A DNA stretch of 64,000 bases from Haliotis rubra. Taxonomy: Eukaryota. The translations under genes and the position numbers were made by a program. Shown here one piece after another: positions 22,579 to 59,614 of this stretch. The notes under the pieces were generated by a model. It searched no databases. It was not told the origin of the DNA and saw nothing but the letters and a program-made list of their open reading frames with translations. Within the stretch, counting starts at the first letter, position 1, and every line of letters begins with the position of its first letter. Location: contig NW_025765858.1 of NCBI RefSeq assembly GCF_003918875.1, positions 248,001 to 312,000 of the forward strand. The letters run 5' to 3'.

Positions 22579-25500
22579 TTATAAACAAGCGTCAGTGTTG
22601 TTGTAGTGCTTCCATTTCTGTATGATGGCGTACAGGCTGTCTCCGGGAGATTCCGACCAGTAACGTAGAGTCACATCTCGGCGACCTAGCAGCCTGAACG
22701 ACGTCCTCAGTTTACCGTTACGCACGCCGCACTCTAGCATCTTCTTCAAGGCGTTAAGTGCTGCCTCGCTGGGCTCCCGGTTGTTAAAATTACCGATGAA
22801 GGCGATTCCTGGTGGAAGAAAACATATCACCTTTAAACACTGAAGTTGTGCCAGGTAAATGATCATGTGTCCTACGTCTAATGGTCTACTCACAGGAAGA
22901 GAATGAACTTGTTTTGTCAAACATGAAACTACGCAGGCCAAGTATATGACTGGGAAGGGCACAACCCTACGGCCACCATTAGGTAACTGTGATTAACATT
23001 GTGCTAAAATATGCAGTGCCACTCTTATCAAATGTCTTACTTTTGCACGAGTGAATGAGTCAGTGAGTATGGTTTTACGTCGGTTTTAGCAATATTCCAG
23101 CAATATCACCAGAAATGGGATACACACAGTGTACGCATGAGGGCAATTAAACCCGCGTCTTCAGCTCGACGTGCGAACGCTTTAACTATACATTTTCACA
23201 GCTGCAAATAACAAGATTGTTTACACTGTCCTCCGCTTACCGATAGATTTACTATTGCAGCCCCCTGTGTGTGCACCAACGGCGTCCCAGCCACGACCCT
23301 CGTACACGTTGCCGTCATCGCCGATGGCGAAGTTGTAGCCGATGTCAGACCAACCTGCAAATGAACAAAAACAAATTATCAATCAAAATTACTGCCTTGT
23401 GAAATATAGAGCAGGAAGTGACTGTGAAAGCACTGAAACCAGTGAGAGAAGTATAGAAACAATAACCTTTTTATATTTGCACGTATTTAACGTTCGGAAA
23501 TTGGTCGACATCGTGTTTTTTAAACGTGCGTTTTCAGTGGGTATCTAGGACGGCAAAATAGAAATATGACATAACACATGAAGTTTTTTGAAAGGGTTCG
23601 TTCGCATGCAACTACAAACAAAGTTGTTTTTCACTGAAATTTGACTCGATATATTGGGCTGTCAATACTATACACCAAATTCCACCTGACACCTAAAAAT
23701 ACAATGTTTAAACAACACGTATTTACATGGTCGCTCGAGCAACGTGAAGGGAAAATGAGTGAGTGAGGGAGTATGGTTTTACGCCGCTTTTAGCAATATT
23801 CCAGCAATATCACAGCGGGGGACATCAAAAATGAACATTGTACCCATGCGGGGAATCGAACCCGGATCTTCGACGTGACGAGCGAACGCTTTAACCACAA
23901 AAATGACACGGAAAACACAACTGGTTTCTTGACGGGACCAACTGGAGAAATTAATTTCTTTTACTACGGAAATTACACTCAATACAACTACAAAAATATT
24001 GATATAAGCCAAAAAAAGCCAGATCAGTTCTTGATTTTGTACACGACATGCAGAAGTTTGTCAGGGGTTGGGGGATGGGGAGTAATTCACATTGTACATG
24101 CTTCTCCATACAATTCATCATCAGCATTCACCCCAAACCGCAGCCATAAACGAACTCTTACCGCGCCCATCCAGATGGAAATTCTGATAGCTCTGCATAA
24201 TTCTGACACAGTCTTCCTTCGTGCTGCAGCCGGCAGAACCTCCATGGTGGATGATGGCGTACTGAGGAACTTCAACCAGAGTCCCCACCCCCCAGGCGAG
24301 CAGGGCGTGCCCCCCACTCCGAACGGGTGATGATGACTGGACATCCGGGCAGCTGGGTGTCGGGAAGACATTCCTTATGGAAAGTTATCTCCCCCTTCCT
24401 GATCCAACCAATCTGGGAAGATAGGTTTAACAAAGGGATATATTGTAATTATTGACGAAAATCCCGTTGGATATAAATGCAACAGTGAAGAGACATATTA
24501 TTTACTAAGATAGCGTGAGTGAGTATGGTTTGACGCCGCTTTTAACAATATTCCAGCAATATCACGGCGAGGGACAACAGAAATAGGCTTCACATATTGC
24601 AACCATGTAGGGAATCGAACCCGGGTCCTCGGCGTGACAAGTGAATGTTTTAATCACTAGGCTACCCCAGCGCCCAAGCTAAGATAGCTAAGAGTTATGT
24701 AGGCTGGATCCAATTCCGACATGGTTGCTGAAGAACTGCCAGAACGCTGTGATACCATTCATAACATCGCTTGTCAATCAGAAAGGTTTCTTGTTTTATC
24801 CCTTTTATCTGCCAATTATGTAGGGAATCTACTCCAATGCCACACATGGAACAGGTGTTTGCGATTAAGAGTGGATTGTGTTATCCACTAGCTTATCCTA
24901 CTTATACAATATACGTTAGGAAGGTAATGGATAACTAAAGACATCCACCAGCTCCCGTACTTAAACATAGGACGGCATGACCATACAGAAAGAAGCTTGT
25001 TTTTAGTGTATTGTATTACAAAGCAGACAGCAGTCTCTTAGCTTCACGCCGCAGACCCGTAAACTATCTTCTATGGACCAGACATTCCCGTGGTTGATAC
25101 CATGTGTTACGACCCATACCTTCACAGTACGATGACATATAACCTTTCAAGGTCGCTGAGGGTCTATTGTCATCCTGAATAAACTACACTTTAAACCTGC
25201 TGGTCGTTACACCCGTGGAGATGCGGGTTAAAATTAATCTTCAGTAACCCACGCTTGTCGTAAGAGGAGACTAACGGGATCGGGTGGTCAGGCTCGCTGA
25301 CTTGGTTGACACATGTCATCGGTTCCCAATTGCACAGATCGATGCTCGTGCTGTTGATCACTGGATTGTCTGGTCCAGGCTCGATTATTTACAGACGCCG
25401 TCGTATAGCTAGAATATTTCTGAGTGCGGCGTAAAACTAAACTCACTCACCTACTGCTGGTCGGTAGCATTAGTAATATGGAGGAATTCAGTTTCATCAA

Positions 25501-28112
25501 AAGGTAATGATATTAACTGACACTCTCCTTATCGTTTAATGGATCTGGGCCACGTACCTTATCACCGTGTTGAACAGGAACGAAAGTTCCGTTACTGCAC
25601 TTGAAAACATCTCCCCGAATTCTTCTGCACTGGCCAGAGGTCAAGGTCGTCAAGGGGACACCATTCGTGTCATGTGTTTCATGCACATCTACGTCCTCTT
25701 TCACACAGACACAATCGAATGTATCTGAATATGACATGAAGAATACCACATAAAGAAACTCTAGCTCTCAAACAATGACACATACTTGCGATAATCGAAC
25801 CTTTAAGATAATCATAACTTCCATACATTGACACATATTTTTGACAATCGCAGAGCTACGATAATGGCAACGACCAGACACTCATACATGCTTGCAGTAA
25901 TCACATACATGTATTTAAGATAATCGTAACGGCCCTATATTTTCACAAACTTACAATAATAGCGGTGCTAAGATATCCGTAAATGTAACACATTAACACA
26001 TATTTACTAATAAATACTCGTTAATAAATAACTCGTTGCTACACGCTTACGATTATCACAACGCAACGCCTAGACTTTAAATGTTACCTTTAAAATAATC
26101 GTACCTCACATAAACCGAGATTTGTTTTATTTATAACCGCAGCGTTAAAGTGGTCGTAACTCAGACACGCTGAACAGACTTGCGACCAACTGCTTAATAC
26201 CTTCAGTGTTGCATAGTACCACACAGTGATAGATAGTACCACACAATATTACAAAAGAGAACAGAGTATTACACTTGAAAGTATTACACAGTATTACACA
26301 GGGTTCGATCCCAGAATAAATGGATCAGTGTGATCCAAATGTAACTACGAGTGAGTGAGTTTAGTTTTACACCGCACTCAGCAATATTCCAGCTATATGG
26401 CGGCGGTAAGTAAATAATCGAGTCTGGACCAGTGATCAACAGCATGAGCATCTATCTGCGCAATTGGGAACCGATGACATTTGTCAACCAAGTCTGCGGG
26501 CCTGACACCCGATCCCGTTAGTCGCCTCTTACGACAAGCATAGGTTGCTGAAGATCAATTCTAACCCGGATCTTCACGGGTGAAACACAACTATGAACAT
26601 ACCGTAACAGTCTTTGATGTAGACGTCCGAAGTTAAAACCCAAGCCCGCTGAAACATGTACCAAACGTTTAAGTAGTCGTCGTGTTAGTTGATGCAAGTG
26701 GCACTTGGTTGGAGGTATTGCAGTGGTAACAAGTTTGACTGAAGTCAGTTAAATCCACTGTCTATCTTGGCAAGAAAAACCAAGTTATTACAAATGGACT
26801 TCCCAATCTCCCGCATTAAGCTAGCTTTACTATCATCTAAACAGTATATAAATTCCAATATTTCTGTCTAGTTGAAATTCTGAGTGAGTTTTACTCACGC
26901 CGCTTTTTAGCAAAATTCAAGCAGAATCACGGCGGGGGACGCCAGAAATGGGTTTCACACATTGTACCCATGTGGGGAGTCGAACCCGGGCCATCGGTTT
27001 GACGAGCGAACGCTTTAATCAGTAGGCTACCCCACCGCCCCAGTTGAAATTGGAGATGAGAAACAATTAAATCGTATGAATGGCCTAAAAGATCTGACTT
27101 TATGAAATTTGCGTTTTCTATTTCCATAATAAAAATGAAGGTGACGAGTCGTTTAGCTGTCACTGGCATACTTGGATAAATCAAGCCATCAACAACGCTT
27201 TGACCATTATCTCAGTTATTTAAACTTGAAGTGGAAGATCCGATGTGATGCAGATTTGATGCCGTTACCATTTTGGGAGAACCGACATACGCGGGTATAT
27301 ACGGTGCTGGCAAGCAGCGAGGCATAATCAGAGTTACACAGGATTCAAACACAGGTTCGCAGGCACTGGAATTATATTTGTCCTTCCGAATCAAAGACAC
27401 GGCCGGAGTGCGGAAGGTCGCGGGTTCGATCCCCGACCGCGTCATACCAAAAGAAGTTAAAATATTGTACTTGTTGGTCCCTGTCTGGCGCTCGGCATTA
27501 ATGGGTACAACAAGGACTGGTCGGCTCGGAGTCAGTATAATGTGTCTGAGTGGGGTATTCATGCTTCACTGCGGCATGGTATCTCAATGGGCTAGCACTA
27601 TAAAACCAGCTTCAGTCGGGGCTAGTACAAGCAGCCGCACATACACATACACACGCATGCACTTTGTCATATGAGCGAAATATTCTCAAGCACAACGTTA
27701 AACCCAATTCCACCACCACCATCAAAGACACGGATTCGTTTAAACCAGGGACCCTATCCAGAAAGCGTTCATAGTACTACGTCTTTCGTAAACCAATGAC
27801 ACGGGATAGGGTTACGATAGGTCGTGACGTTACGAATGCTTTGTGGATCGTCACCCAGGTTTAGTGTAGTTACATTTTACTCACCTCGCCGTAGTAGGAC
27901 ACGTTGGCGTAAATCCTGCCGTCAATGAGGGCTTCCTGCTTGCCATGATAAGGGAGACAATTCGGCGATTGCAGTAAACCAAAGTTGTCTTCCTTTGATC
28001 CGTATTTCACCTCTATTTCAGTGTCGACTGATGCGCATGCGCACCTTTTGCCAGAAGTTTTCGTGCCAAGAGCGAGCGTTGTCACAACGAGTGAAACAAG
28101 CACGCGAAACAT
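22579..28112 (-). CDS. PGRP: PGRP-A: signal peptide + 2 SH3b-like Cys modules + PGRP/Amidase_2 domain; predicted non-catalytic; +1 frameshift in this assembly
   Basis: Exons 28112-27885, 26648-26603, 25724-25558, 24412-24162, 23354-23241 and 22808-22579. Motifs [62 protein letters not shown] and LLGRRDV..SESPG. An extra G in the run at 24288-24293 shifts the frame. About 344 aa if corrected. Confidence 0.9.
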
Positions 28113-28888
28113 CTAAAACAGGTAAGTAACAGTTCTCTAAAAAATACCAAAACATTGTGAGTTGGAGTGAGTATTCTCACCGATATGATCTCAAGTTTTT
28201 CTAGTGTATTATGCGGATTGGACATATGCAATCTGCGCACATTTTTAATTTAAAAATCTACTGAGGTGAAAAAAAAATAATTCATAAATAATTGCAAAAT
28301 ACAATTTGATCTTAATCGTCAAGAAAACAATCCTTTGCATCCTTCCAAGTTTGCTGATATCAATAATATTAGCCATTAGCTGTACTCCTGTACACAAAAA
28401 ATGATTTTAAAGCTGAAACCATCTCGGGATTCCAAACCACATGTACGATCAAAGTATGTCCCATGTCCCATGTGTTCGGATATTGCATATCAAAGAATAT
28501 CAAACATCGTGGAGAAGATGCATGTCATCATGACCCAATTGCGTAGATCGATGATCATTATGTCAGTCACTGGATTGTCTGGTCCAGACCCGATCATTTA
28601 CAGACCGCCGTCAGATAGTTTTAAGAGTGAGTGAGTTTGGTTTTGCGCCGCTTTTAGCAATATTCCAGCAATATCAGGGCGGGGACACCACAAATGGGCT
28701 TCACACATTGTACCCATGTGAGGAATCGAACCCGGGTTTTCGGCGTGAAGAGTGAACGCTTTAACCACTAGGCTAGGCCATAGCCCAATAAGACTGAGTA
28801 TGGTTTTACACCGCTTTTAGCAATCTTCCAGCAATATCACGGCGGCGGACACCAGAAATGGGATTCACCCAATAAAATATAAACATAC

Positions 28889-29027
28889 CTTGATGTCCTA
28901 CACACCAACACAAATCGTCCCGTCCCTGCAGATAGCGTTGTCGCTGTCGCTGTCGTTGTGGACTGTCGCTGTCGTTGTGGACTGAACACAGAATGTCGAG
29001 ACCATGGTGCTTACGGGTCTTTATAAG
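28889..29027 (-). promoter_or_regulatory. Putative TATA box and non-coding first exon of PGRP-A
   Basis: Minus-strand TATAAA at about 29020-29025 and a donor AAG|GTATGT at 28889/28888. The coding exon starts with ATG directly after an acceptor (ttttag|ATG), which implies an upstream UTR exon. Confidence 0.5.
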
Positions 29028-29549
29028 ACCTAAACATCCTCATCCTGACAAGCGGGAACACTACCACTCCAGCCAAAAAACAGCCCTTCGGATCAACCTT
29101 CCCCACGGAACGCATGCAACTGCCCACGAAAACATGATCTCTTCCTACACCGTTCATCACTGACTCCTTACGTCATTTGAAAAGAGAGGGCTACTTCCTG
29201 TTTGTTGTTCTTCATCTAAACTCTCCACGACACTGATCATAAAGTGAAACCCGTTTATCCGGACCCCTATATATCAGAAAAAAACCCGCATGTGACATGA
29301 TATTTACGTGAAACGAAATATACACTTAAAATGTTTCATTTAGCCGGAACTCCGGCTACCGGATCCGGACTGAAAATTAGAATTACCAGTAACGGGAATA
29401 CATTTGTCCCACTTACCGGACAACAACTACGTTTGACGATGTTTGTTTTGCAACTCATCACCCCGCAGGCAACATCAAAATGCGGGCATTGTGTGGGCTG
29501 TGTTAGTCTACTCATTATACATACCGGTTATGAATAAACACACATTTTT

Positions 29550-29945
29550 TATACTGAACGTTATTTATCATGTGTCAGTGTTCAGAAATATAGAATAGCT
29601 TTAGCTTGTTTCCGTTGTTCATCTCATGATTTATTAATTGAAAGAGGTAGGTTTATGAATATCAAAAGAGGGGATAGAATATGTAGATATTGTAATAATA
29701 ATCTTATAGAAGACGAATATCATTTTCTTCTACTATGCCCAGCGTATAATACTATGCGGAAAAAAGATATTAAAGAACTCTATTTTGTCCATCCATCAAT
29801 TGATAAATTTTCGTCTCTATTGAATTCTTCAAATGAAAGTGTAATTAAAAATGTTGCCTTTTTCATTTATCAAGCCATGTCGATAAGAAATGTGTATATA
29901 TGAAATGTACTATAGGCCTGTGGCCTCCTCAGAACTGAAATAAAG
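29550..29945 (+). mobile_element. 3' end of a non-LTR retrotransposon (LINE) ORF2
   Basis: Reads YRIALACFRCSSHDLLIERGRF..RICRYC..IEDEYHFLLLCPAY, a C-terminal CCHC motif typical of LINE ORF2, followed by AATAAA. Confidence 0.75.
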
Positions 29946-34592: not shown

Positions 34593-36112
34593 TATAAGAA
34601 TCTATACCGAAACGTCGCTATTGTGAAAATAAACAAGTTGATCATCCATAAAGTTGTGTCATCTCTATACCAACTTCTAGAATGCCTCTCAATCAAATCG
34701 TAAATCCCACGACTGTCGTTGCGCTCAGATCACTTTGAGCAACGGGGCCCTCTAGAGGTTGTTCAGGAATGCTTCTAACCTGGAATCCTCCTACTGGGAA
34801 TACGATGAAGTTGTCTTCTCATCTCATCCTGTTGTGCGTAATTATGGATAGGGAACATCGGATGGTTGTGACAGTGTCGTTCGCCTATAAATCTGATGCC
34901 ACTGAACAGCGTTGTAGAGTCGGGAGGCATCTCTTGATTGTGGCCTGTGATAACGGTCTTTGGGTACATTTNNNNNNNNNNNNNNNNNNNNNNNNNNNNN
35001 NNNNNNNNNNNNNNNNNNNNNNNNNNNNNNNNNNNNNNNNNNNNNNNNNNNNNNNNNNNNNNNNNNNNNNNNNNNNNNNNNNNNNNNNNNNNNNNNNNNN
35101 NNNNNNNNNNNNNNNNNNNNNNNNNNNNNNNNNNNNNNNNNNNNNNNNNNNNNNNNNNNNNNNNNNNNNNNNNNNNNNNNNNNNTCACCCACTCACTCCT
35201 GTCGTCGAAACCGTACATTTTACTGCTACATTTTACCAGGTAGGGGTACACGTAGTTACAGTCGCCTGTCTCCCATACCCTTGTGAATGAGTGAGTGAGT
35301 GAGTGAGTGAGTGAGTTTAGTTTTACGTTGTATTCAGCAATATTCCAGCTGTAAATAATCGAGTCTGGACCAGACAATCCAATGATCAACAACATGAGCG
35401 TTGATCTGCGCAGACCCTTGAGAAGAAATTTGATTTAATATTAAATTTTGAATTTTTACCCATCTCCAGTGTTGAAGGATAGGGCTTATGTGAATTGGTT
35501 CAGCTCTTACCTAAATTTTGAGGTAGTTTGGGGATCATTTTATGTATTACATATATGTTTGAATACAATAACTTCAAGTTACATATGGTAATGTGTTTTA
35601 TTCAAACTAGTGACAATGTATCGTGAATTACAGACATATGTGGGTATACACATAAAGGACCGTTTCATTTTTCGTTTCGTATGTTTGTTGTTTAACGCCG
35701 TAATCAACGATAATCCAGCAATATGGCGTCGGTAGACATGTTTGGACCAGCCAATCTCTTCAACTCGATCACGACTCAACTAATACATATGGCTTTACCT
35801 GGTCACAAGTAAAACATGTGCGAAGACTTGCTTTTGGTGGTAGATTGTCAGAACTGGGACATTTATCATAACCAAAGCATAAGTGATACACTTAAAAAAC
35901 CTGTGAGCGCACACGCCAGGAAGTATCCCTCAGTCGCATCCAGTGACAAACATGTGGTTTTTTGGACTTATCTCGGAGCATCAAGCCGCATGACGCAGCA
36001 AAAATGTCAGGTCAAATATGTTTTATCCATCTTATCCATATGAAACGATCTGATCGCAATGTGTCCAGAAATGAGGCCTTCGTGATGTGACAGGTATCTG
36101 AGTGACCATGTC

Positions 36113-37207: not shown

Positions 37208-38646
37208 ATGAAGGCCCTTCTCCCTCTTGTGGCAGTATTTGCTGCGGTACTCACGGAAGTGACGTCACAGAGCTGTGCTTCTCATTCAAACGGATGCAGC
37301 ATTCCATTTAACTTGCCATATTTCTTCAAGAACCGCTTCACGCCCAGCTGTGACAAGCACGATGTTTGTTATGCGTGTGTAAGTACTAATACCACGTGGT
37401 TTATTATCCATTTTTATGACCATAGTGGCGATATTCGTAAAGTATCGGGTAATTGGCTCTTCGTGACGAAAATCAACATAACTACGCACTGCAACTACCA
37501 CATAAATACCTAACGACGCAACCAAGGTGGCAATACCTCATTAACTCCGGCAACCAAGACACCAATACCTCACTAATAACGATATTCGTAAAATATCGGG
37601 TAAATGGCTCTTTGTGACGACAATCAACATAACTACGCACTGCAACTACCACATAAATACCTAACGACGCAACCAAGATGACAATACCTCATTAAATCCG
37701 GCAACCATTTGCAAGACACCAATACCTCACTAATAACTAAACCAACACATCTACACCTTATTACGCACATTAACCAACACATTAATACATCTGGAAAACA
37801 GCAGGAAGCCGGAGACCCACAATGTCCATATCCGACTTATCAAGGCAGTCCACGCGTGCATTTTCTAGATAATCGATACCCAGACACCTGTCTCCGCACA
37901 ACAAAAACAAACCTGTCTTCCTGCAATCGAGATGTGCANNNNNNNNNNNNNNNNNNNNNNNNNNNNNNNNNNNNNNNNNNNNNNNNNNNNNNNNNNNNNN
38001 NNNNNNNNNNNNNNNNNNNNNNNNNNNNNNNNNNNNNNNNNNNNNNNNNNNNNNNNNNNNNNNNNNNNNNNNNNCTGTGTTTTTGCATTGTTATGTACAG
38101 ATAGAAATAGCTGCTATGTTGTTGTTATATTAATCATAACAGTTTTACCTGCATATTTGTAATCTGTGTTCAATTATTAATTTACAGTACTTTTACCTGT
38201 AAGAAACGCTCTTTCATTTATCTTATTTATCCTGTACTCACGTATGTGCTCTGTCATGCTGAACAGCAAATTCCCACTCAGGGTAATAAAAAAAATTATT
38301 CTTAAGCAGTAAACCGACCAAGATACATAGAGCTTCGCGTAGGAACGCAATCTGAAATACATACAAGTTGTATATGAGTTAATCGAATGTAATCCATCTC
38401 CAGGCTGGCCATTACGGAAGAACCCAGAACGACTGTGACAGGATGCTGTACAACGAGGCAAACAGGGTGTGCTCATCAATGAGGAAACGTTTCATCCTCA
38501 GCACTCTGACTGCAGCAGAGAAGGAATTCTGTAAGGCCATATCACTGAGCTACTACGCGGCTGTTCATCAGTTTGGTTCCTCCCACTTTTCAGCAAGCTC
38601 GGCCAGTTGGTGTTCCCAGTCCTGGGTTAGGAGTTGCATGCCCTAA
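37208..38646 (+). CDS. Conodipine-like (group IX-type) secreted phospholipase A2, copy A, 137 aa
   Basis: Exons 37208-37378 and 38404-38646 (phase 0). Signal peptide MKALLPLVAVFAAVLTEVTS, then SNGCSIP, FTPSCDKHDVCYAC (His-Asp active-site motif), DCD, a dibasic RKR site, and a C-terminal YYAAVHQFG..WC..WVRSCMP segment like the conodipine beta chain. Confidence 0.88.
37430..37737. repeat. About 151-bp tandem duplication in the PLA2-A intron
   Basis: GATATTCGTAAA.TATCGGGTAA starts at both 37430 and 37581. Confidence 0.85.
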
Positions 38647-42538: not shown

Positions 42539-42573
<35 letters not shown>

Positions 42574-44843: not shown

Positions 44844-45504
44844 GTAAGCATATATAGAATCATATATGTAGTGTTATTTATGTACAATATGTGTGTGAAT
44901 GTCGGGATATTTTCATCATCAGCTCTGCAGTAGTTAACACAGTGATTGTTTGCAATGATGTGTCGACGGCTAATGTGATACAACTACTGCAGCCGAAACA
45001 GAACGATGGGGTCCAGTCCTTCAGAAGCACATTCTATATAACTGATCATCACTGAGGAACACGAGGTGGTGGGGTAGCCTAGTGGTTAAAGCATTCGCTC
45101 GTCAAGCCTAAGACCCTTTGCTCGATTCCTCACATGGGTACAATGTGTGAAGCTCATATTCTGTCCACCGCAATGATATTGCTGGAATATTGATAAAAGT
45201 GGCGTAAATAGAGAATCTCACTCATTAACTCATGTTACTGTCAGTTGGAAAAACAATGATTTCAGATTATATATTGAAAGTCGATTAAATACAATATATT
45301 TGTAATATGGCCAATGTACCGGTTATGATGAAAATCAATTTCCAAGCTCTTCAGTTACAAATTCTGCCAGATATCAAGTGTTATGAATTCATGTCACGTG
45401 ATAGCACTCAGAGAAAGGTTAGTGAAAACCAAGACTCTACTTCTGCGCGTCTACAGTGAATGACTTCCACCAACGTCAGTGATTTTAATTTTCAGACTTG
45501 TACG

Positions 45505-48500
45505 ATGAAGGCCCTTCTCCCTCTTGTGGCAGTATTTGCTGCGGTACTCACGGAAGTGACGTCACAGAGCTGTGCTTCTCATTCAAATGGATGCAGCGTT
45601 CCGTTGGACCTCCCATACTTCTTCAAGAGCCGCTTCACGCCCAGCTGCGACAAGCATGATGTCTGTTATTCATGTGTGAGTCCGCAATTTAATGTCAGAT
45701 ATTTATCCATTTTAAATCAATGGTTGTTGTTGTGATATTTGCAAACTAAGGTCTTCCAAAGATCAGAATGTTTGGTTTAAAAGTAATGAGAACTGGACAC
45801 CTGTTACTGTATGTATGGTTCCATTGTCATACTGCAAAACAGAAACTGAACATAGAGAATTTCTGGGTTTCATCTTCTTTTTTATTGTTTGGTACAACGT
45901 TAAGGACTTGTTCTGGCCCCGTCATCAGGTAGAACTAAAGCACAAACCCTGAAACAGAAGATGAAACCCAGAAAATTATCATTTTTCATCAAATAGCCTC
46001 TTCTAAAATGCCAATCAAACATCTAAAACAGAAACTGTCTCTATCACACACGAAGTGAGTGAGTGAGTGAATGGGTGTGATATACGCCGCTTTTAGCACT
46101 GTTCCAGCAATATCACGGCGGGGGATACCAGAAATGGGCTTCACACATTGTATCCATGTGCGGAATCGAACCCGAGTCTTCGGCGTGACGAGCGAACGCT
46201 TTAACCACTAGGCTAACCCACCGCCCCTATCACACACGAAAACCAACACATTAAGACCTAACTACAAGCCGCTATCTTCATACCTACCTCTGTAAGACAA
46301 CCAACGCCTTCCATCTATTTCTGTACGTAAAAACGACACTTTCATGCCTACCTCTGTACCTCTGTATCGACCCCATAGCTACTTCTGTACGACATCCAAC
46401 AACTTCACCAATACCTTGGGCGTTGGTGTAGCCTAGTGGTTAAAGGGTTCGCTCGTCACGCCGAAAACAGGGTTCGATTCCCCACATGGGTACACCTACA
46501 CCTAACTCTGCACAACAAACAACACCTTCATACCCACCGTAATACGTGACACATTTATATCTACGTCTGCACAACAAACAACACCTTCATACCCACCACG
46601 ATACCTGACCCCTTTATGTCTATCTCTGCACAACAAACAACACCTTCACACCTTCCACGATACCTGAGACATTTATGTCTATCTCTGCACAACAAACAAC
46701 ACCTTCATACCCACCACGATACCTGACATTTATATCTAGCTCTGCACAACAAACAACACCTTCATATCCACCACGAAACCTGACATATTTATATCTAACT
46801 CTGCACAACAAACAACACCTTCACACCTTCCACGATACCTGACACATTTATATCTAACTCTGCACAACAAACAACACCTTCACACCTTCCACGATACATG
46901 ACACATTTATATCTATATCTGCACAACAAACAAAACCTTCACACATTCCACGATACCTCACATATTTATATCTAACTCTGCACAACAAACAACACCTTCC
47001 ACGATACCTGACGTATTTATATCTAACTCTGCACAACAAACAACACCTTCACACCTTCCACGATACCTGACACATTTATATCTATATCTGCACAACAAAC
47101 AACACCTTCACACCTTCCACGATACCTGATATATTTATATCTAACTCTGCACAACAAACAACACCTTCACACCTTCCACGATACCTGACACATTTATATC
47201 TAACTCTGCACAACAAACAACACCTTCACACCTTCCACGATACCTGACACATTTATATCTATATCTGCACAACAAACAACACCTTCACACCTTCCACGAT
47301 ACCTGATACATTTATATCTAACTCTGCACAACAAACAACACCTTCACACCTTCCACGATACCTGACACATTTATATCTAACTCTGCACAACAAACAACAC
47401 CTTCATACCCACCACGATACCTGACACATTTATATCTAACTCTGCACAACAAACAACACCTTCACACCTTCCACGATACCTGATATATTTATATCTAACT
47501 CTGCACAACAAACAACACCTTCACACCTTCCACGATACCTGACACATTTATATCTAACTCTGCACAACAAACAACACCTTCACACCTTCCACGATACCTG
47601 ACATATTTATATCTAACTCTGCACAACAAACAACACCTTCATACCTTCCACGATACCTGACACATTTATATCTAACTCTGCACAACAAACAACACCTTCA
47701 CACCTTCCACGATACCTGACACATTTATATCTAACTCTGCACAACAAACCTTCACACCTTTCACGATACCTTCACACCTTCTACACCTTCACCTTTCACG
47801 ATGCCTGACACATTTATATCTAACTCTGCACAACAAACAACACCTTCACACACCTTCACGATACCTGACATGATTTATATCTAACCCTGCAGAACAACAC
47901 CTTCATACCCACCACAATACCTGACAACTTGAGTCTATCTCACACAACAAACAACACCTTCATACCCACACGATACGACACATTTATGTCTATCTGACAA
48001 CATTTATATCTACTTATATCACATAAACAACAACCTTCACACCTGCACATACCCTGACACATTTATATCTAACTCTCTGCACAACAAACAACACCTTCAC
48101 TTCCACGATACCTGACATGATTTATATCTATCTCTGCTCTGCACAACAAACAACACCTTCACACCTTCCACGATACCTGACACATTTATATCTAACTCTG
48201 CACAACAAACAACACCTTCCTTCACCCTGACATACTTATACGATACCTGACATATTTCATATCTAACTCTGCAACAAACAACACCTTCACACCTTCCACG
48301 ATACCTGACATATTTATATCTAACTCTGCACAACAAACAACACCTTCACACCTTCCACGATACCTGACACATTTATATCTAACTCTGCACAACAAACAAC
48401 ACCTTCACACCTTCCACGATACCTGACACATCTATATCTAACTCTGCACAACACCTTCATACAACACCTTCTGCATGACAACTGAACCGTCATATCTACC

Positions 48501-49691
48501 TCTGTAACCAATACATATATATCATTCACACGGAAACAGATGTATACGCGCGTTTGCACTACAATCGACGCCATTTGTCTTGTACACGCGCGACATCTGG
48601 AACCAATATACACGTCTGACCAGGCATATATATATATATACCTGGCACGTTTCTATATACAGGTAGGTTACGCGTAAGCAGGTAAACAACCGACGACTGT
48701 CAACACGTATGCGCAACCAACCCTTTCATGTATGCGTACATTCGCACAACAATCGACACTTATCATGATATACACATATCACGACACATATACTACTACC
48801 CGTACAACTCGCACATATAAACCTATTATCGCATGGCGACCAACAAATACAAACATGTATTCGCCGGCAACCAACACATGTATTTCGCATACATTCGCCG
48901 ACAACCAGCACGCATAACACCAAGCTTCGTCCTGGGCATTGTGGTCTTGTTGCATATGTAAATATTACTAATAAATATATTTCTGCAAATTGCACAGTGC
49001 GTAATCAGCTAGATGATGTGGCTCATTATGTACTGCATTGCCAATAATATGTAAATCAACTTAAGGCGATGGTAGAATCTCTGACAGCTTTCCATATTGA
49101 CATCTCATTGACTGGACTGTTGTGCTCAAGGAATATCACTCGCATTCTTGATTATATTAAAGCGTGTGGCAGCTTTACTACTTTATAAAAGTTAAAAAAC
49201 TTAGCAAAACTTATGAAGGTGTAAATAGGCCTAGCTGCCCGAACACCTATTAACTTTTAATTATCTATCTATCCATCCATCCATCCATCCATCCATCCAT
49301 CGACAACCAACACATATATGCTTACATTCGCACACATGTACGACTGTCAATGTATAAATCTACAGTAAACCAATCCATGTTTTCATTCAAATATTATAGA
49401 CATGCAAGGTGTGTACATGAGATCCTAATGTCCTACATCATTCCACAGGCTGTCCTTTTCCACAAAACTAAGGAGGACTGTGACAAGATGCTCTTCAATG
49501 ATGCAAAGAGAGTATGCTCATCAATGAAAAAACGCTTCATCGTAAACACTCTGACTGCAGCACAGACAAGCTTCTGCAAAGCCATATCACTCAGCTACTA
49601 CCAAGCTACCAAATATTTCGGCGCCTCCCACTTTTCAACAACCTCTGAGAGCTGGTGCTCCGAGTCCTGGGTGAAGAGCTGTATGCCTTGA
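45505..49691 (+). CDS. Conodipine-like secreted phospholipase A2, copy B, 137 aa
   Basis: Exons 45505-45675 and 49449-49691. Same signal peptide as copy A, FTPSCDKHDVCYSC, a KKR site, and 10 Cys in identical positions. Confidence 0.88.
46501..48470. repeat. About 54-bp minisatellite in the PLA2-B intron
   Basis: Unit TCTAACTCTGCACAACAAACAACACCTTCACACCTTCCACGATACCTGACACATTTATA-like, more than 30 units, degraded from about 47750 to 48250. Confidence 0.95.
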
Positions 49692-50971
49692 CAACCCTGT
49701 GTAAGTCATTATCAATAAATACTAAGTTGGTACACTGATGTACACTCGGTGTCATGACTCGGTGCTGTCCCTTGTGTGGCCTTGGAATTGCATTTCAGTA
49801 ACCCATGGTTGTAGTAAGAGGCGACTAACGGGATCGGGTGGTCAGGCTCGCCGACTTGGTTGACCCATGTCATCGTATCCCAATTGTGTAGATCGATGCT
49901 CATGATGATCACTGGATTGTGTGGTCACACTCACTTTCTGCCTTGGTTTCCAGGAAGTTGGATCAAGGATCATCCTCGAGGATCCAGGTCATTATTTATC
50001 TATCATATTTTCATGAATAACCAGGGCCTAAATGTTGCCACTGATCTGATACACAATCCGCTTAACACCACTTGAACACAAGGGAAAGGTTTATTCCATC
50101 AGGCGATCACACCCTAGCACATTTAATGATTCACACATTATTGCAAAGCTATGGGTCGAATGTTCACTTGCCGCGTAGGCACCAAAGAACATTGGGGTAT
50201 AATTTTCATTATTTCAGTATGTGAAGCTAATTGGTGAAAACGACGACAATAATAAAAAATAACTTTTCTTAACATGGCAAGACTCAGACATTCCGAATAT
50301 ACACGATGGCAAAAGCGGTGCTTTCCTTAACATTAAGGAGTGGCTACACCAAGTACTGATGTGGTCGCTGGTGGTGCCTCATACCATCACAACAATCATT
50401 ATTGGACAACTGTGTTACATTCCGTTTAGTTGTATTGTCATGGTAACCATATTTTCCGGAATTGATTCACGTTCTATTTAAAAGGTAAATTGTTCCCAAA
50501 ATTGAAATTTCATTTGGGTGAGAACTGGATATGAAAATGTTCCAATTAAATTTATATTAGTAATATCTGTTGATCAATCTGTTTATGATTATATTGAAAA
50601 AAAAGAAACAACAAGATATAATCGGATATTGATGTGACAATTAATATTAATGTTTTAAAACTACCCACATAAGCCTTGCCAGTAAAACAAATCGTATTTT
50701 GGGGCTCAAGCTATAAAAGTACCATTAGTCGATGTGATATGTAGACATGGAGCGGAGGGTGTCTCTCCCTCTTTCTCGCCAATTAAAAGAGCCTAACAAG
50801 TAACCTTCATACTTGCTACTTTTAGAAGATCGTTGTCTTTAATCGTTTAAAATAATTGTGATGCACAAAACGAACGGGATGAACAAGACTAAGTCGTTAA
50901 AAAGCAAGACATTCTTTGAAATGCGTACATATAAATCAGAAGTGTTTCATAAGTAGTATCATAAACCGTTT

Positions 50972-53900
50972 CTATTTTGTGCTTGGGACGACAGTCGCGT
51001 TATAGTTGGGCCAGTTCTGTATAAGGGCATAGAAGGTGTCTCCGGGACACGACGTCCCACCGGACTTAGCACCAACGTCGCGGTGGCCCAACATCGTATA
51101 CGTCGACGTCAGTTTGCCGTTGTGGTCTCCGCAGTGTATGAGCTTCTGGAGGACATCGAGTGCCGCCTGGTCTGGAAGACGCTGCATGAAGTTCCCGATG
51201 ACGCAGAACCCTGTGAAACAAGGGGACTATATGAAACTCCTCACACGGCCATGTTTTGGAGGTGAGTGAGTGAGGTTGACATAGATACGGACAGGGTGTC
51301 AGTTTAACCACGAATTGTCAGCTTTATGTGTGAGGGTGATTGAGTAAGTGAGTGTGGTTTTACGCCAATTTTAGCAATATTTCAGTAATATCACGGCGAG
51401 GGATACCAAAAATGGGCTTCACCTATTGTACCCATGTGGGGAATTGAACCCGGGTCTTCGGCGTGACGAGCGAACGCTTTATCCACTAAGCTACCCCACC
51501 GCCCCTTTGTGTATTGGGGAAACACGGAAAGGTGTAGGTCTTAGACCTTTATCATTTGGGCAAAACTCACGAACATAGGCCTGGCACTGACAAGCCTTGA
51601 GGTGAGGTGAGGTAAAATTGGGTTTAACGTCGTGCTTGAGAATATTTCGCTCATATGACGACGTGCATGCGTGGGTATGTGTATGTGCGGCTGCTTGTAC
51701 TAGCCCAGACTGAAGCTGGTTTTATAGTGCTAGCCCACTGAGATACCATGCCGCAGTGAAGCATGAATACCCCACTCAGACACATCATTCTGACTCCGAG
51801 CCGACCAGTCCTTGTTGTACCCATTAACGCCGAGCACCAGACAGGGACCAACAAGTACCAAAGTTTAACGTATTTTGGTATGACGCGGTCGGGGATCGAA
51901 CCCGCGACCTTCCGCACTCCGGGCGGACGCTCTAACCACTACACCACGGAGGCGGTCGACAAACCTTGAATATGAATAGGCTTGATCTGGGATTCAACCC
52001 TGAGATATCGGTATTCGGTTCTGCAACGCCAAAGTCACACCCTTAGCCAACAACCCACATTCATGTTGTCAAAAACGGCAGTGTGTCTTTAAATTCTGAG
52101 GGTGCTTCAAAGATTTGAAATTTCCTATTTGTTGCCTGACATTTCACAATTGAAAATAGGCATGATATTATATTTATAATAAGGATTATAGTGCATTTCT
52201 ATGGCGCTATTGCCATACATGATGCTCGATGCACAGGACCACCTATCACCATAAAATAATTTGCAACGGAATAACCCCTGGCATATTCTTTTCGGTAGGT
52301 TCAGTTGTCATGAAGATATGCACTGAATGCCCTCAGTGTCGTCATGTAGTTACAGACACATAACGGGTGTGCGGGGGACAATCACCTGTATGTAATTGGC
52401 ACCCAATAATCTACCCACAATTACATGATAAAGCACCACCAATTTACACTGACTATGTTGTTCACTACTGTAGTTTTAGGTGAGTGCCACATCTCTCCGC
52501 CAGTAGTTGAAACAACATCACCTCTAGCTACATGTATTGGCTAGTGTTCTACATCTTTCCACCTGTATATATGATAGAACATCACCTATAGCTATTGGCT
52601 AGTGTTCTACATCTTACCACCTGTATATGTGATAGAACATCACCTATAGCTATTGGCTAGTGTTCTACATCTTTCCACCTGTATATGTGATAGAACATCA
52701 CCCATAGCTACATGTATTGGCTAGTGTTCTACATCTTTCCACCTGTATATGTGATAGAACATCACCTATAGCTATTGGCTAGTGTTCTACATCTTACCAC
52801 CTGTATATGTGATAGAACATCACCTATAGCTATTGGCTAGTGTTCTACATCTTTCCACCTGTATATGTGATAGAACATCACCTATAGCTATTGGCTAGTG
52901 TTCTACATCTTTCCACCTGTATATGTGATAGAACATCACCCATAGCTACATGTATTGGCTAGTGTTCTACAGCTTACCACATGTATATGTGATAGAACAT
53001 CACCCATAGCTACATGTATTGGCTAGTGTTCTACATCTTTCCACCTTACAGGATAGAACATCACCCATAGCTATTGCCTATAGTTCTACATCTTCCCATC
53101 AGTACTTGATGCATCACGTATAGCTATCGACTATTGTTCTACATCTTCCCATCAGTACTTGATGCATCACTTATATCTACTGACTATTGTTCTACATGTG
53201 ACCATCAGTAATTCATACATCACTAATAGCTATTGACTATCGTTCTACATATCCCATCAGTACTTGATGCATCACTTATAGCTATTGACTATTGTTCTAC
53301 ATCTTCCCATCAGTACTTGATGCATCACGTATAGCTATCGACTATTGTTCTACATCTTCCCATCAGTACTTGATGCATCACTTATAGCTATCGACTATTG
53401 TTCTACATCTTCCCATCAGTACTTGATGCATCACTTATAGCTATCGACTATTGTTCTACATCTTCCCATCAGTACTTGATGCATCACTTATAGCTATCGA
53501 CTATCTTCCTACATCTTCCCATCAGTACTTGATGCATCACCTATAGCTATCGACTATCGTTCTACATCTTCCCATCAGTACTTGATGCATCACTTGTATC
53601 TACTACCATCAGTACTTCATACATCACTTATAGCTATTGACTATCGTTCTACATATCCCATCAGTACTTGATGCATCACTTATAGCTAGTGACTATTGTG
53701 CTACATTTTTCCACCTTAAAGGATAGAATATCACCCATAGCTATTGGCTAGTGATCTACATCTTTACTTCGGTATATGTGATAGAACATCACTCATAGCT
53801 ATTGACTATTGTGCTACATCTTTCCACCTTACAGGATAGAACATCACCCATAGCTATTGCCTATAGTTCTACATCTTCCCATCAGTACTTGATGCATCAC

Positions 53901-56900
53901 GTATAGCTATCGACTATTGTTCTACATCTTCCCATCAGTACTTGATGCATCACTTATATCTACTGACTATTGTTCTACATGTGACCATCAGTAATTCATA
54001 CATCACTAATAGCTATTGACTATCGTTCTACATATCCCATCAGTACTTGATGCATCACTTATAGCTATTGACTATTGTTCTACATCTTCCCATCAGTACT
54101 TGATGCATCACGTATAGCTATCGACTATTGTTCTACATCTTCCCATCAGTACTTGATGCATCACTTATAGCTATCGACTATTGTTCTACATCTTCCCATC
54201 AGTACTTGATGCATCACTTATAGCTATCGACTATTGTTCTACATCTTCCCATCAGTACTTGATGCATCACTTATAGCTATCGACTATCTTCCTACATCTT
54301 CCCATCAGTACTTGATGCATCACCTATAGCTATCGACTATCGTTCTACATCTTCCCATCAGTACTTGATGCATCACTTGTATCTACTACCATCAGTACTT
54401 CATACATCACTTATAGCTATTGACTATCGTTCTACATATCCCATCAGTACTTGATGCATCACTTATAGCTAGTGACTATTGTGCTACATTTTTCCACCTT
54501 AAAGGATAGAATATCACCCATAGCTATTGGCTAGTGATCTACATCTTTACTTCGGTATATGTGATAGAACATCACTCATAGCTATTGACTATTGTGCTAC
54601 ATCTTTCCACCTTACAGGATAGAACATCCCCCATAACTATCGACTATAGTTCTACATCTTTCCACCTTACAGGATAGAACATCCCCCATATCTGTTGACT
54701 ATTGTTCTACACGTTCCCACCAGTACAGCGTAGAACAGTATGCATAAATATTTACTATTGTTCTACATTTCTTCACCACTACTTGATACAACATCATCCA
54801 TAGCTATGGACTATTGTTCTACATCTTCATCATAAGATACAGCACAATCCATATGCACTGACCTAGTCCAATACTGTTATAGTTATATTATACTGAACCA
54901 CAAAGAGAAATGTCGCACCGATAGCGGTTTCTTAAAGCACACACTTTAATTCACTCTAATTAACAATCAAAACGGAGGATTGAGTTCAAACTTGACAATT
55001 ATGGTTAACACATTTTCGGGAATCACATTTAGAGTTCACACAAACAAAATCACCAAAAATGGTACCATTAAGATACCCCAAAGTTAGTATTGTGTGTGGC
55101 CTCTATGGGCATCGATGAAAGCGTTGCATCGTCTGTACATGGAATGAATTAGCCGGTTGATGAAGGCCATAGGCACTTGGGTCCATACTCTGTGAAATGC
55201 CTGATCGAGTCCAGCAGCAGTTGTCGGCCTTGGGTGGAGGTCATTCAGTCTTCTTTGAATCTCGTCCCAAAGGTGTTCTATTGGACTCAAATCAAGACTG
55301 AGTGCAGGCTATTGTAGGGTTTGGATGCCATGTTGTCTTAGGAAGTCCAATGTTACTCTGGCAGTGTGGGCACGAGCATTGTCTTGCTGGAAGATGTGAT
55401 TTCTGTAATGTCCAAAATGTGGTACAACGTGGGGTCTTATGACTTGGTCAATATAGCGAGCAGCTGTCACGTCATTTCCTCATCCTGGACCGAGATTCTG
55501 GAACACCACGGTGCTAACTATCTGGTTCAGACCGATTGCACCTCACACCATGATGCTTGGACCACCCCACGAGTCTCTTTCAACAATACACTCATTGGAA
55601 AACAGTTCCCCACGCCTTCACCATACTCTCACTCTGCCATCGACTGTCGAAACACAATATCGGCTTTCATGAGATAAAAGCACAGTTCTCCATTGTCGAT
55701 AACGCTTTCGATGCTGAGTTGCCCATTGCAGTCGGTTTTGGCGATGATGAGCGGTGAGGACAGGACTACGATATGGTCTGTGACAGCAGAGGTTTCTCCC
55801 GCGCAAACGTCGACGCACTGTATCGGCACTGATGGGTCTGTTGTGAGTCCCAATGGTCTGGCGTGCTGTTTCCGTCTCTCTGGGGAAGCGATCCTGCAGA
55901 TGGTGTCGGCCTTGACGTTTTGATGTTACTGAAGGTCGCCCACTGCGTGGACGGTCTTGGATGTTGTTAGTGACCTGATACCACTCCTGCAGTCGGTAGA
56001 TTGTCCTAACATGAACATTAAAATGATTGGCTACCCTCCGTGCAGTCTGGCCAACTTGCAATCGTCCCAAGACTTGGTTCCTCTGATCTCTCGTAAGTCG
56101 TGCCATGGCGATTGTGTCAAAACAAAAATGATTTCAGGCGAGTTTGGGACTCGCTTTCATTGGTAGGGTTGTCACGATATGCACGTGCATTTTCATTTTC
56201 ACGAATGTCATACGGAACCTTTTACCACGTCTGCCATTTTAGGTGCGTTTGGTCGATATGCTTTTTCATCAGAAAACACACTGATGTTGGTAATAACTGT
56301 CAATTTGGATTGAAAAACATGTTAATAAAACGATACAATCATAATAAAAACACCATTTTGTATGAACAAAATCTTGCATTTGGTTTTGAAAAGCGACGTT
56401 TCTTTTGTGGTTCAGTATACAAGCGAACCAAGATGGCGACCATGTTTAAAGTCATTCGTCACCACTCGCCCCTTTCCGTAACCTCCAACAAGAAGACAAG
56501 AAGCTATTCTGCTTGTCCCGGAATAACACGAGTTGGTCACGAACGGTTTAAAAAAATAATGTAACCAAGCGCTCGCGTCCGTTCAGTGCCGATGCGAGCG
56601 CTCACAGGAGGCAATAGCGTGGGCGCTCGCGGTTCTGAACATGCCTCTGGTAAGCTGGGTACCGGGAACAATCTTAGTACCGGGAGTAGGAGGCGAGACC
56701 CTATTAACTATAAGCGCTAAGTCTGCTACGCGAGTAAACAAGGGAACCAGTTCGTGTTTTCGGGGGAAGCTCCTTACCGTGTCCGTCCATGTGGTAGTTC
56801 TGATAGCTCTGTATCATCCTGACACATTCTTCTCGTGTGTGACAACCTGCAGTCGCCCCGTGGTGGATGAAGGCGTAGTACGGAGTATGGGAGAGTTTCA

Positions 56901-59614
56901 CGTGTGGGGTGCTGGGTGCACGTGCCCCCCATTCTGCGCGTGTTATGATTTGAGGACATCCGGGCAGCTGGACTGCAGGAGAACCCGGATTGGCATGTCC
57001 TGAAAAACACATTAGCTCCGAAATAAGTGAGTGAGTGAGTTTGGTTTTACCCCGCTTTTAGCAATATTCCAGCAACATCACGGCGGGGAACACCAGAAAT
57101 AGGCTTCACACATTGTACCCATGTGGGGATTCGAACCCGGGTCTGCGGCGTTACGAGCCAACGTTTTAACCACTAGGCTACCCCACCGCCCACGAAATAT
57201 GTACATATTCCAAATAGCGCAGAATACCATTATGGTATTGAATAGGTCACAGGAGGTAAAGGATAGTTTAGACAATAATGATAGTATTAATTTAATCCGT
57301 GAAGGTCCGGGCTAGAATATTGATCTTCAGTAACCCATGCTTGTCGTAAGAGGCGACTAACGGGATCGAGTGGCCAGACTCGCTGACTTGGTTGACACAT
57401 GTCATCGGTTCCCAATTGCGCAGATCGATGCTCATGCTATTGATCACTGGGTTGTCTGGTCCAGACTCGATTATTTACCGACCGCCGCCATATAGCTGGA
57501 ATATTGCTGAGAGCGGCGTAAAACCCAACTCACTCACTTGCTCTGTCTGCACAAGACACCTACCTTTACGTGAGGGGCGGTGTTTTAAACTCACTTACTC
57601 ACGACCTGAAATGCAAGACTCACCTCCACAGTTTTTATGGAACACCACGTTTCCTTTCATGATCCATCCGATCTGAAATAACAAAAGACAACTACAACTA
57701 CAACTACAATTTCTCTGTATAAGAACAAGGTGAAGACTCTTTTGAAACCTGAAAGCCTTCCCATCAAGGCATGCCTTAGGCGCTGTTGAAGAATTTACGC
57801 TGCTTGCCTATTTAAGAGTGAAGTGAGCCCCAAATACTCAGCCTCGTCTACAGAGAAATCTGTTGTCATAAATCCGTAAAATATCGGAGACCCCATCCAT
57901 AAATATACGATCACAAGCATGTATAAATTGTGTGTCAACACCGTACAATACGTTTACGATGAGCGTCGCTGTGCAGAGGAAAGTAATACGAATAAGTGCA
58001 CAAACCACCAACGACTGTACCAGACTGCTACAGACTAGTACAGAGTTTGCAATGTGTTGCTTCATCATCGAGTAACTTCTACACTGACACACATAAACAA
58101 TATATATTATTTCAAAAGCGCGTTTGAGTAGGTTTCCTGTAATAATTTGGCGTCATTTTCACAGAACGGTGACCATGACGAGTACAAGCGTATAAATCTA
58201 CACATACACATACAAGCGCGCACGCACGCACATACAAACGCGCACACACTCAGACGATGACCTTGACCTTGGCATCGTAATTGTTTGTCTAACAGAGATA
58301 TTGTAAGCAGCCGCTGACCTTGTTGTTAACGCTGACTTGTACCCACGTCCCGCCTGTGGAGTTGTAGGTTTTCCCCTGCAAGGTCACACACTGACCAGAT
58401 GTCAAGGTCGCCATTGTAGTACTTCCGGTTCCATATCCAGTCAAGACATCTACCGTAGCCGTGGCGCAGACACAGTCAAACGATTCTGTGAATGGAAGTT
58501 TTAAGTATACTATATACTGAGGAGACTTCAAGTCGCCATCAATACCATTGCTATTTTGTAAAGGTGAGTGAGTTTAGTTTTACGCTGGACTAAGCAATAT
58601 TCCACCTATATGGCGGCGGCCAGTAAATAATCGAGTCTGGACCAGACAATCCAGCGATAAGATTGCATAACACGAAGGGGTCACGGGACCAAGCCTCCAT
58701 AATACAGAGTTGCGCTGTTCTGGTTCGAATCCCGGATGGTGCGATGATGATTATATGAGTTTCAGCGCCTTGTCGTGCTATTGAGTAGAAGACCACTCCT
58801 GTGTCATTTCGGGCCTTAATGGAATTGTTACATTAAACTAAAATGCTGTGATGTAACTTGAACTTTGTTCAAATCGGCAATAAAACTCTCTCACTAACTC
58901 ACTTACCCTGACAATTTTTAATGTAGATATCAGATGTCAGCAACCAGGCCCCCTGCAACAAAGGTCAAGGTCAACGTCATTGAAATATTATCAAGTAGGA
59001 AAATATATAACTTGCTTTCTGTGTTCACCGTCGAACACATCAATAATATCATCAACTTACAAAAACCTCCAAATCTTCACAGTCACTGGCCCGACTGGCT
59101 AGTAACTTTTCATGGGGTCATTTTGTAAATACATCACTCTCTCCCACCTGTTGAGTTATGATACACTTTTAAATCATGCAAGATTATGGCCAGATTAAAA
59201 CGTTCATCATATGAGCAGCTTAATGACGAAAACCGTGTCATGCTGGTAATCTTTATTCCCATCTATTTTTGTAATCTGTTGCTTAGTTTCTACATTCAAA
59301 TTTCGGGCTAATGAATTATTTTGTGGGATAGTAACTTTCAGGCATAGCAAGCAAAATTTGGAAACTATTTCGTAGACTGGGCCTACCTGTCCCTGGTAAA
59401 GTACATGTGCGTATATGCGACCGTCATTGATGGCCGCCTGGTCTCCTTGATAAGGGAGACAGTTGGGTGACCTCAGTGTTCCAAAAGTGTTGTCCTTGGA
59501 CCCGTATGTCCGCTCAATCACGGTGTCCACCGACGCACATGCGCACTGGGCAGCTGGAGCTGCGTATCCCGAGCTGCTTAGCGCCACAAGGAGGGAGAGA
59601 ACAACCAAGGACAT
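50972..59614 (-). CDS. PGRP: PGRP-B: signal peptide + 2 SH3b-like Cys modules + PGRP/Amidase_2 domain; Zn ligands intact, central exon not found
   Basis: Exons 59614-59387, 58952-58907, 58485-58319, 57672-57624, 56999-56778 and 51210-50972. Motifs CPQIITRAEWGAR, YAFIHH, QNYHMDGH, FCVIGNF and MLGHRDV..TSCPGD. The first three exon sizes (228/46/167) equal those of PGRP-A. Confidence 0.88.
51600..51957 (-). mobile_element. SINE family 1, full-length copy in the PGRP-B last intron
   Basis: Same sequence as 10502-10860; flanks GACAAGCCTTGA and GACAAACCTTGA. Confidence 0.85.
52505..54835. repeat. 53-65 bp minisatellite with a 783-bp higher-order duplication in the PGRP-B last intron
   Basis: Units CATCAC.TATAGCTAT.G.CTA.TGTTCTACATCTT. 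The landmark CCACCTTACAGGATAGAAC recurs at 53041, 53824 and 54607. Confidence 0.95.
54891..56417 (-). mobile_element. Tc1/mariner DNA transposon, full-length but degenerate
   Basis: TIRs TACTGAACCACAAAGAGAAATGTCGC and GCGACGTTTCTTTTGTGGTTCAGTA, flanked by TA. Transposase fragments MARLTRDQRNQVLGRL..DRPRSGRP (56106-55618) and LSPIEHLWDEIQRRL (55290-55084) are broken by frameshifts and stops. Confidence 0.92.

Follow-up and report, generated by a model that had tools for sequence, protein, structure and literature searches.

A cluster of PGRP and PLA2 genes shared among abalones is probably an inherited gene block rather than a coupled antibacterial module

Introduction

Bactericidal phospholipases A2 (PLA2s) of mammalian group IIA must pass the bacterial wall, wall-active factors potentiate them, and the peptidoglycan recognition proteins (PGRPs) that act as amidases cut that wall. 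The conodipines are group IX PLA2s of two disulfide-linked chains (PMC12027567), and PGRPs that carry SH3b modules (SH3b-PGRPs) are already known in molluscs (PMC11810698). Here we describe a stretch of the Haliotis rubra genome in which relatives of these two families adjoin. The window, meaning the whole 64,000-nt stretch that was analyzed, covers positions 248001-312000 of contig C968 (G000:C968:248001-312000) in an assembly of 1.378 Gb in 2,855 contigs. It holds, in order, PGRP-A (-), PLA2-A (+), PLA2-B (+), and PGRP-B (-), so that both conodipine-like PLA2 genes lie between two SH3b-PGRP paralogs on the opposite strand (Table 1). An earlier proposal, referred to below as the original prediction, had suggested that this arrangement might be a two-pronged antibacterial locus, an idea that our analysis slightly disfavors. 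The cluster is probably a block of genes that the sampled abalones received from their common ancestor and that is functionally uncoupled, with no sign of a regulatory unit; the genes are most likely driven by separate promoters and would act independently of one another, in defense or in digestion.

Layout of the cluster and its conservation

The order and orientation of the four genes were largely as first described. The convergent stops of PLA2-B and PGRP-B, tail-to-tail and predicted to be about 1.3 kb apart, are separated by 1,280 bp, and the claim that no other host gene lies between the four agrees with what we find in the window, where only short interspersed nuclear elements (SINEs), a satellite, and a Tc1-type fragment occupy the intervening DNA; the annotations of three other abalones call no further gene there either. 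The original prediction stands less well in two respects. PGRP-A and PLA2-A are indeed divergent, but “head-to-head” cannot be taken to mean a shared promoter when their ATGs are 9,095 bp apart. Likewise, two intact PLA2 genes do lie between two paralogous PGRPs, but the PGRPs themselves are not intact as assembled, since PGRP-A is frameshifted and PGRP-B is without its central amidase exon. Runs of N occur at 21068-21255, 34972-35184, 37939-38074, and 63530-63690; the two that fall inside the cluster, one intergenic and one in the intron of PLA2-A, touch no exon.

Table 1. Features of the Haliotis rubra cluster and its surroundings, in coordinates of the window
Feature	Position	Strand	Basis or remark
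PGRP-A, sensor-type SH3b-PGRP (predicted)	22579-28112; exons 28112-27885, 26648-26603, 25724-25558, 24412-24162, 23354-23241, 22808-22579	-	Orthologs P0156, P0158, P0006 and splice sites
Six-G run shifting the PGRP-A frame	24288-24293	-	Three-frame reading and DNA alignment; five G in H. asinina, H. rufescens, H. cracherodii
PLA2-A, conodipine-like PLA2 (predicted secreted), 137 aa	37208-38646; exons 37208-37378, 38404-38646	+	Spliced translation equals P0002 (XP_046565315.1) exactly
PLA2-B, conodipine-like PLA2 (predicted secreted), 137 aa	45505-49691; exons 45505-45675, 49449-49691	+	Spliced translation equals P0001 (XP_046565314.1)
PGRP-B, amidase-type SH3b-PGRP (predicted)	50972-59614; exons 59614-59387, 58952-58907, 58485-58319, 57672-57624, 56999-56778, 51210-50972	-	P0172, P0173 and splice sites
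PGRP-B 3′ untranslated region, at least 1 kb	49931-50971	-	RNA-like contigs of a close relative (X13, X14, X16)
Satellite, unit ~53 bp, ~2.4 kb	52514-54888		Large PGRP-B intron
Tc1/Tc3-type transposase fragment	55618-56106	-	PF01498 HTH_Tnp_Tc3_2, 43.3 bits; same PGRP-B intron as the satellite
Assembly gap	34972-35184		Intergenic, PGRP-A to PLA2-A; flanks collinear with an H. asinina stretch without a called gene
SDR gene (adh_short)	12544-16829	-	Downstream of PGRP-A; same neighbor in three other Haliotis genomes

Absence of the linkage from related genomes would have spoken against the original prediction, and within the genus the linkage is present, with the order shared by four Haliotis species. 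In H. rufescens, an A-type PGRP of 344 aa lies 13 kb head-to-head from a single PLA2 (P0003), which is in turn tail-to-tail with a B-type PGRP of 369 aa. H. cracherodii has the same order, again with one PLA2, at spacings of 10.5 kb and 2.3 kb. H. asinina carries four genes: the B-type PLA2 is 88% identical to PLA2-B, a B-type PGRP of 380 aa lies 1.1 kb past the stop of that PLA2, and an intact A-type PLA2 (L011:5757-6307; 137 aa, with a 137-nt intron), which is absent from the called genes, sits 4 kb upstream of the B-type copy. Across these three species, the divergent ATGs of PGRP-A and PLA2 are 10.5-13 kb apart. In the two North Pacific species, H. rufescens and H. cracherodii, the single PLA2 clusters with A-type sequences; PLA2-B may have been lost there, or it may have arisen later.

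The conservation extends beyond the cluster itself. A short-chain dehydrogenase/reductase (SDR) gene follows PGRP-A in H. rufescens, H. cracherodii, and H. asinina, as it does in the window (at ~12.5-16.8 kb), and from 12.5 to 44.9 kb the window is collinear base for base with H. asinina, in genes, SDR gene, and intergenic DNA alike. The number of synonymous substitutions per site (dS) between abalone orthologs is 0.25-0.5. Because the whole region, including its intergenic DNA, still aligns between abalones, the conserved order needs no selection to account for it.

Outside the genus, we saw no linkage around the homologs examined in Lottia, Littorina, and Pomacea, with the reservation that the orthology of those homologs is uncertain. 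The DNA out to 10 kb from the PLA2 homologs contains no called PGRP, either in Lottia, where the gene lies between a pyridoxal phosphate (PLP) enzyme and a CS-domain gene, or in Littorina, where it lies between a G protein-coupled receptor and a RING/Macro gene; no PLA2 is called beside the tandem cluster of SH3b-PGRPs in Pomacea. We found no case in which the linkage is retained where the surrounding synteny has been lost, and it is kept only in Haliotis, with collinear flanks. The paralogs within H. rubra give a similar picture. A search of the whole genome with protein queries placed PLA2 paralogs on C2152, C1481, C2159, C336, and C102, and PGRP paralogs were found on C913 (at least 10), C2035, C91, C1469, C2074, C791, and C540, with a third copy on C968 itself. 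Only the window holds both families, and the other paralogs found share no contig (5 contigs for PLA2 and at least 7 for PGRP).

The PLA2 genes

The two PLA2 genes were modeled from open reading frames (ORFs) and paralog mapping, followed by exact threading of the NCBI proteins. Both are complete two-exon ORFs with GT/AG introns, and both bear the NCBI name “conodipine-P3-like.” They are tandem duplicates, 77% identical to each other, and are present as two copies in H. rubra and H. asinina. The intron of PLA2-A (donor GTAAGT, acceptor CAG) has a length of ~1 kb in H. rubra as against ~0.14 kb in H. asinina, and the assembly gap inside it is without effect on the protein because both exons are complete. 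PLA2-B is followed by a poly(A) signal, AATAAA, at 49714. A word search with PLA2 exon 2 alone matched only the PLA2 gene itself.

The label “conodipine-like” is a fair one, because P0001 (PLA2-B) scores 33.3 bits on Pfam family PF09056 against a cut-off of 29.4, because PLA2-B aligns to the PLA2 of Streptomyces violaceoruber (1FAZ) with the HD motif and the next Asp-containing helix in register, and because a CxxHDxCY motif is conserved in an alignment of 7 gastropod homologs in which His51, Asp52, Tyr55, Asp69, and all ten cysteines are invariant. The match of PLA2-B to PDB entries is weak, with low identity and an E value of 0.003, and an AlphaFold2 model made from the 7-sequence alignment reached a confidence (pLDDT, predicted local distance difference test) of 47, too poor for a fold search. 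Each protein combines ten cysteines and a signal peptide with Asp52 and a His51/Asp69 pair, features from which secretion and Ca-dependent sn-2 phospholipase activity would be expected. At the mid-chain position that in Lottia and Littorina holds an insert with dibasic sites on either side, the abalone PLA2s carry a dibasic KKR/RKR, which may allow the protein to be cut into two chains.

Two PGRPs of different type

To map PGRP-A and PGRP-B, we used orthologs that a word search and a profile built on the N-terminal modules had brought up. Each of the two genes encodes a hydrophobic leader followed by two SH3b-like modules of the form CxC...G.L..G.C...G......W..V. On Amidase_2 (PF01510), where the cut-off is 26 bits, the NCBI model and the orthologs reach 68-73 bits; single PGRP exons of the window, which are fragments, attain only ~18 bits, and PGRPs in the PDB match the Haliotis proteins at E values of about 1e-47. 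The Haliotis proteins score 23.8 and 18.7 bits on SH3_3 (PF08239), under the cut-off of 27, with one exon at an E value of 0.033. A profile built from their N-terminal modules retrieves bacterial and molluscan proteins that themselves score up to 155 bits on SH3_3, and also the SH3b-PGRPs of bivalves and Pomacea.

The A and B paralogs are cleanly split between a putative sensor type and a putative enzyme type. When aligned to 4ZXM, the A type shows changes at two zinc ligands, with the second His replaced by Arg and the Cys by Ser (LLGRRD...ESPGD), and because these two ligands are lost, PGRP-A is predicted to be a binder or sensor and could not be the wall-opening enzyme. B-type orthologs, aligned to the amphioxus PGRP 4Z8I, retain IHH, DIGY, GHRD, and T.CPG, which together are all of the amidase residues, and PGRP-B is the only candidate wall-cutting enzyme of the two. 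A PGRP of this type would be expected to bind peptidoglycan and to cut the bond between N-acetylmuramic acid and L-alanine (MurNAc-L-Ala).

Further PGRPs elsewhere in the genome resemble these two. Contig C968 itself carries a third SH3b-PGRP of A/B-like form at a distance of 180 kb (C968:489450-499805); it encodes 481 aa with a long insert and a non-catalytic RRD/ESPG, needs a frame correction in the exon of its second module, is marked “LOW QUALITY PROTEIN” by NCBI, and has no PLA2 nearby. A tandem cluster at C913:363000-677000 contains at least 10 PGRP genes with the same kind of N-terminal module, and four further amidase exons are clustered on C2035.

Lesions in both PGRP genes

One extra G in exon 4 gives PGRP-A a +1 frameshift. 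The lesion in PGRP-B is larger. A 114-nt exon that encodes the amidase core GWSDIGY...EGRGW...GAH, and that the 369-aa B-type PGRP of H. rufescens contains, is missing from its expected place between the last two exons. Neither a motif search, nor tblastn, nor blastn against the H. rufescens locus, nor a search of the whole genome found this exon between 51210 and 56778 or as a stray copy in the 1.38-Gb assembly. Because the missing exon runs from phase 1 to phase 1, the rest of the PGRP-B coding sequence is still open, with 316 aa, although it has lost 38 codons from the core of the domain. The last exon retains GHRD and TSCPG, and the Tyr of DIGY belongs to the exon that is missing.

The public annotation of H. 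rubra is wrong at this locus, with one chimeric and one truncated model. NCBI model P0169 (LOC124274026, 351 aa) fuses PGRP-B exons 1-5 with the two 3′-terminal exons of PGRP-A, and thus spans 59614 to 22579, with both PLA2 genes inside a 33-kb “intron.” This 37-kb chimera arose because PGRP-A carries a 1-nt insertion and PGRP-B is without an exon. Model P0157 (LOC124274027, 193 aa) is PGRP-A ending at the frameshift stop.

The ratio of nonsynonymous to synonymous substitution rates (dN/dS) against orthologs is 0.12-0.17 for PGRP-A, with 0.10-0.12 in the exons downstream of the frameshift, and 0.17-0.31 for PGRP-B, with 0.16-0.22 in the exons downstream of its lesion. We considered whether both might be old pseudogenes and rejected this, given ratios of 0.10-0.31 and no further stops. 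Since the exons downstream still show low dN/dS, the lesions are either recent or errors of the assembly.

Transcripts of a close relative

Evidence on expression comes from four RNA-like contig sets (X12, X13, X14, and X16) of a close relative at ~95% identity, of unrecorded tissue, which were picked for containing this stretch and were aligned to 45400-51399; among the runs on record as RNA, none contains the stretch. Contigs of X13, X14, and X16 match the genome as far as 51212 and, beyond the acceptor of the final PGRP-B exon, carry on for 827-866 nt of sequence that no longer follows it. This departure is the signature of a spliced PGRP-B mRNA, with enough upstream length for the full coding region. 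X12 covers the last exon and the 3′ untranslated region (UTR). The contig of X13 spans 49931-51212, which puts the end of the PGRP-B 3′ UTR ~200 nt from the poly(A) signal of PLA2-B. We also tried the last two matched bases, AG (51212-51211), as a pointer to the upstream exon, and found them uninformative, as the H. rufescens exon ends in TG.

PLA2-B is represented differently. Its exon 1 has zero cover in all four of the runs, and no spliced PLA2-B contig was found. Exon 2 and the adjacent intron are covered by thin, unspliced pieces, in a stretch of cover that reaches from the PGRP-B UTR down to about 48947; antisense read-through from PGRP-B would account for them as well as any other source. 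As the contigs are those of another species and concern only PLA2-B and the 3′ end of PGRP-B, the result argues only against obligatory co-expression.

Apart from the genes, a SINE-like repeat of ~165 bp occurs at more than 25 places in the window (for example, 46058-46228, 51336-51506, and 57026-57191), and it is massively represented in the RNA-like contigs, at a summed depth of tens of thousands.

Alternative explanations

Several points weigh against the view that the cluster is an inherited and uncoupled block. By a rough estimate from ~6 PLA2 loci and ~10 PGRP loci in 1.38 Gb, the chance that members of the two families would lie within 15 kb of each other is ~0.003, although this is a post hoc figure, as any two adjoining defense families would have been flagged. 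The order has also survived a dS of about 0.4-0.5. In Mytilus, the leading transcripts confined to haemocytes include one that is conodipine-like, alongside defensin and mytilins (PMC4581086), which makes an immune role for the PLA2s plausible. Finally, the expression evidence is weak, being based on contigs from another species, of unrecorded tissue, in runs that were picked by the stretch itself. If these points were given more weight, the cluster could be a functional antibacterial module, in which the PGRP-B amidase would loosen peptidoglycan, the neighboring PLA2 would then reach and hydrolyze the membrane, and the linkage would be kept by co-regulation or co-adaptation. The full set of amidase residues in B-type orthologs, the catalytic His/Asp of PLA2s that show no visible decay, the order common to four Haliotis species, and the haemocyte-specific transcript of Mytilus would all fit such a module. 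We nevertheless consider it unlikely. The divergent pair, at 9-13 kb, has no shared promoter by a criterion of ~1 kb, and the convergent 3′ ends nearly abut, an arrangement that favors interference over co-expression; PGRP-B mRNA occurs without PLA2-B mRNA in four runs. The homologs examined outside the genus have no such neighbor, and the other paralogs found in H. rubra are unlinked. Of the two PGRPs, one is predicted to be non-catalytic and the other, the would-be amidase partner, is without its core exon in H. rubra as assembled. A related proposal, which we hold to be quite unlikely, is that of a lineage-specific abalone cluster, in which a catalytic SH3b-PGRP and one or two PLA2s would be deployed together or tuned through the overlap of their 3′ ends for synergistic killing, with PGRP-A as the sensor. 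Were a module to exist, it would be a rare animal case in which effectors that open the wall and effectors that lyse the membrane are physically linked, it would give conodipine-type PLA2s a role in defense outside venom, and it would have a bearing on abalone disease resistance.

The origin of the PGRP lesions is a question separate from that of the linkage. If both are errors of assembly, a miscounted homopolymer in one gene and a collapse next to the satellite in the other, then all four genes would in reality be intact in H. rubra, as they are in H. asinina. We regard this as possible, at somewhat below even chances. Only one surplus G, within a run of G, causes the frameshift, and the missing exon would have stood at the exact edge of the 2.4-kb satellite array; in H. 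asinina, a homologous array of 53-bp units, ~0.4 kb long, directly abuts that exon. The third paralog on contig C968 also requires a frame correction and carries the NCBI quality flag, a hint that the H. rubra assembly contains indel errors, and dN/dS in the exons downstream of both lesions is 0.10-0.22. Recent lesions, however, would likewise give low ratios, there is no N gap at either site, and the 1.38-Gb assembly holds no stray copy of the exon. Moreover, ~1.85 kb of other DNA, including the Tc1/Tc3 fragment, replaces the exon and the intron upstream of it, which looks like a real rearrangement. If the lesions are real, the locus could instead be decaying in H. rubra, with the PGRPs as pseudogenes or crippled alleles that are perhaps rescued by a read-through transcript in which exons 1-5 of PGRP-B are followed by the final two of PGRP-A. 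Nothing physical stands in the way of such a transcript, since both genes share a strand and PGRP-B is the upstream one; the exon phases match, and P0169 is exactly this join. Automatic models, however, often borrow exons from paralogs, no read support for the join was seen among the contigs aligned to 45400-51399, and in the close relative the sequence spliced upstream of the last PGRP-B exon, about 830-866 nt, is what a normal mRNA would show. We judge this scenario very unlikely.

Comparison with known systems

The mammalian system of group IIA secreted PLA2 and wall-active host factors offers a functional analogy only, in that an enzyme which lyses membranes can reach its target only as far as the condition of the wall allows. 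The abalone PLA2s belong to a different PLA2 group and fold family and are known here from their sequences, and we know of no genomic linkage between group IIA PLA2 and PGLYRP genes. Phage and bacterial endolysins parallel the PGRPs in their pair of domains, a wall-binding SH3b and a MurNAc-L-Ala amidase (Amidase_2) of the T7-lysozyme fold. In Haliotis, however, the order is reversed, with the SH3b-like part first, in animal genes with introns, and the endolysins imply no membrane-active partner gene.

Each family in the cluster also has relatives among molluscs. The abalone PLA2s are small, disulfide-rich, and predicted to be secreted, with CxxHDxCY and a second conserved Asp, as are the conodipines of Conus (group IX) and proteins of the PF09056 fold (1FAZ); unlike Conus, abalones are herbivores without a venom gland, and the KKR/RKR site suggests possible two-chain processing. 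Other molluscan SH3b-PGRPs, such as MgPGRP5 of Magallana gigas (PMC11810698) and the tandem cluster of Pomacea, share with those of Haliotis a signal peptide, one or more SH3b or SH3b-like modules, and a C-terminal type-2 amidase domain. The Haliotis proteins differ in that their A, B, and C types have two Cys-bounded modules (CxC...C) and are longer (344-480 aa), that the A type is without two zinc ligands, and that both copies in the H. rubra cluster are damaged as assembled. Seen against these systems, the genes of the cluster are ordinary members of known families, and their linkage is a genus-level curiosity.

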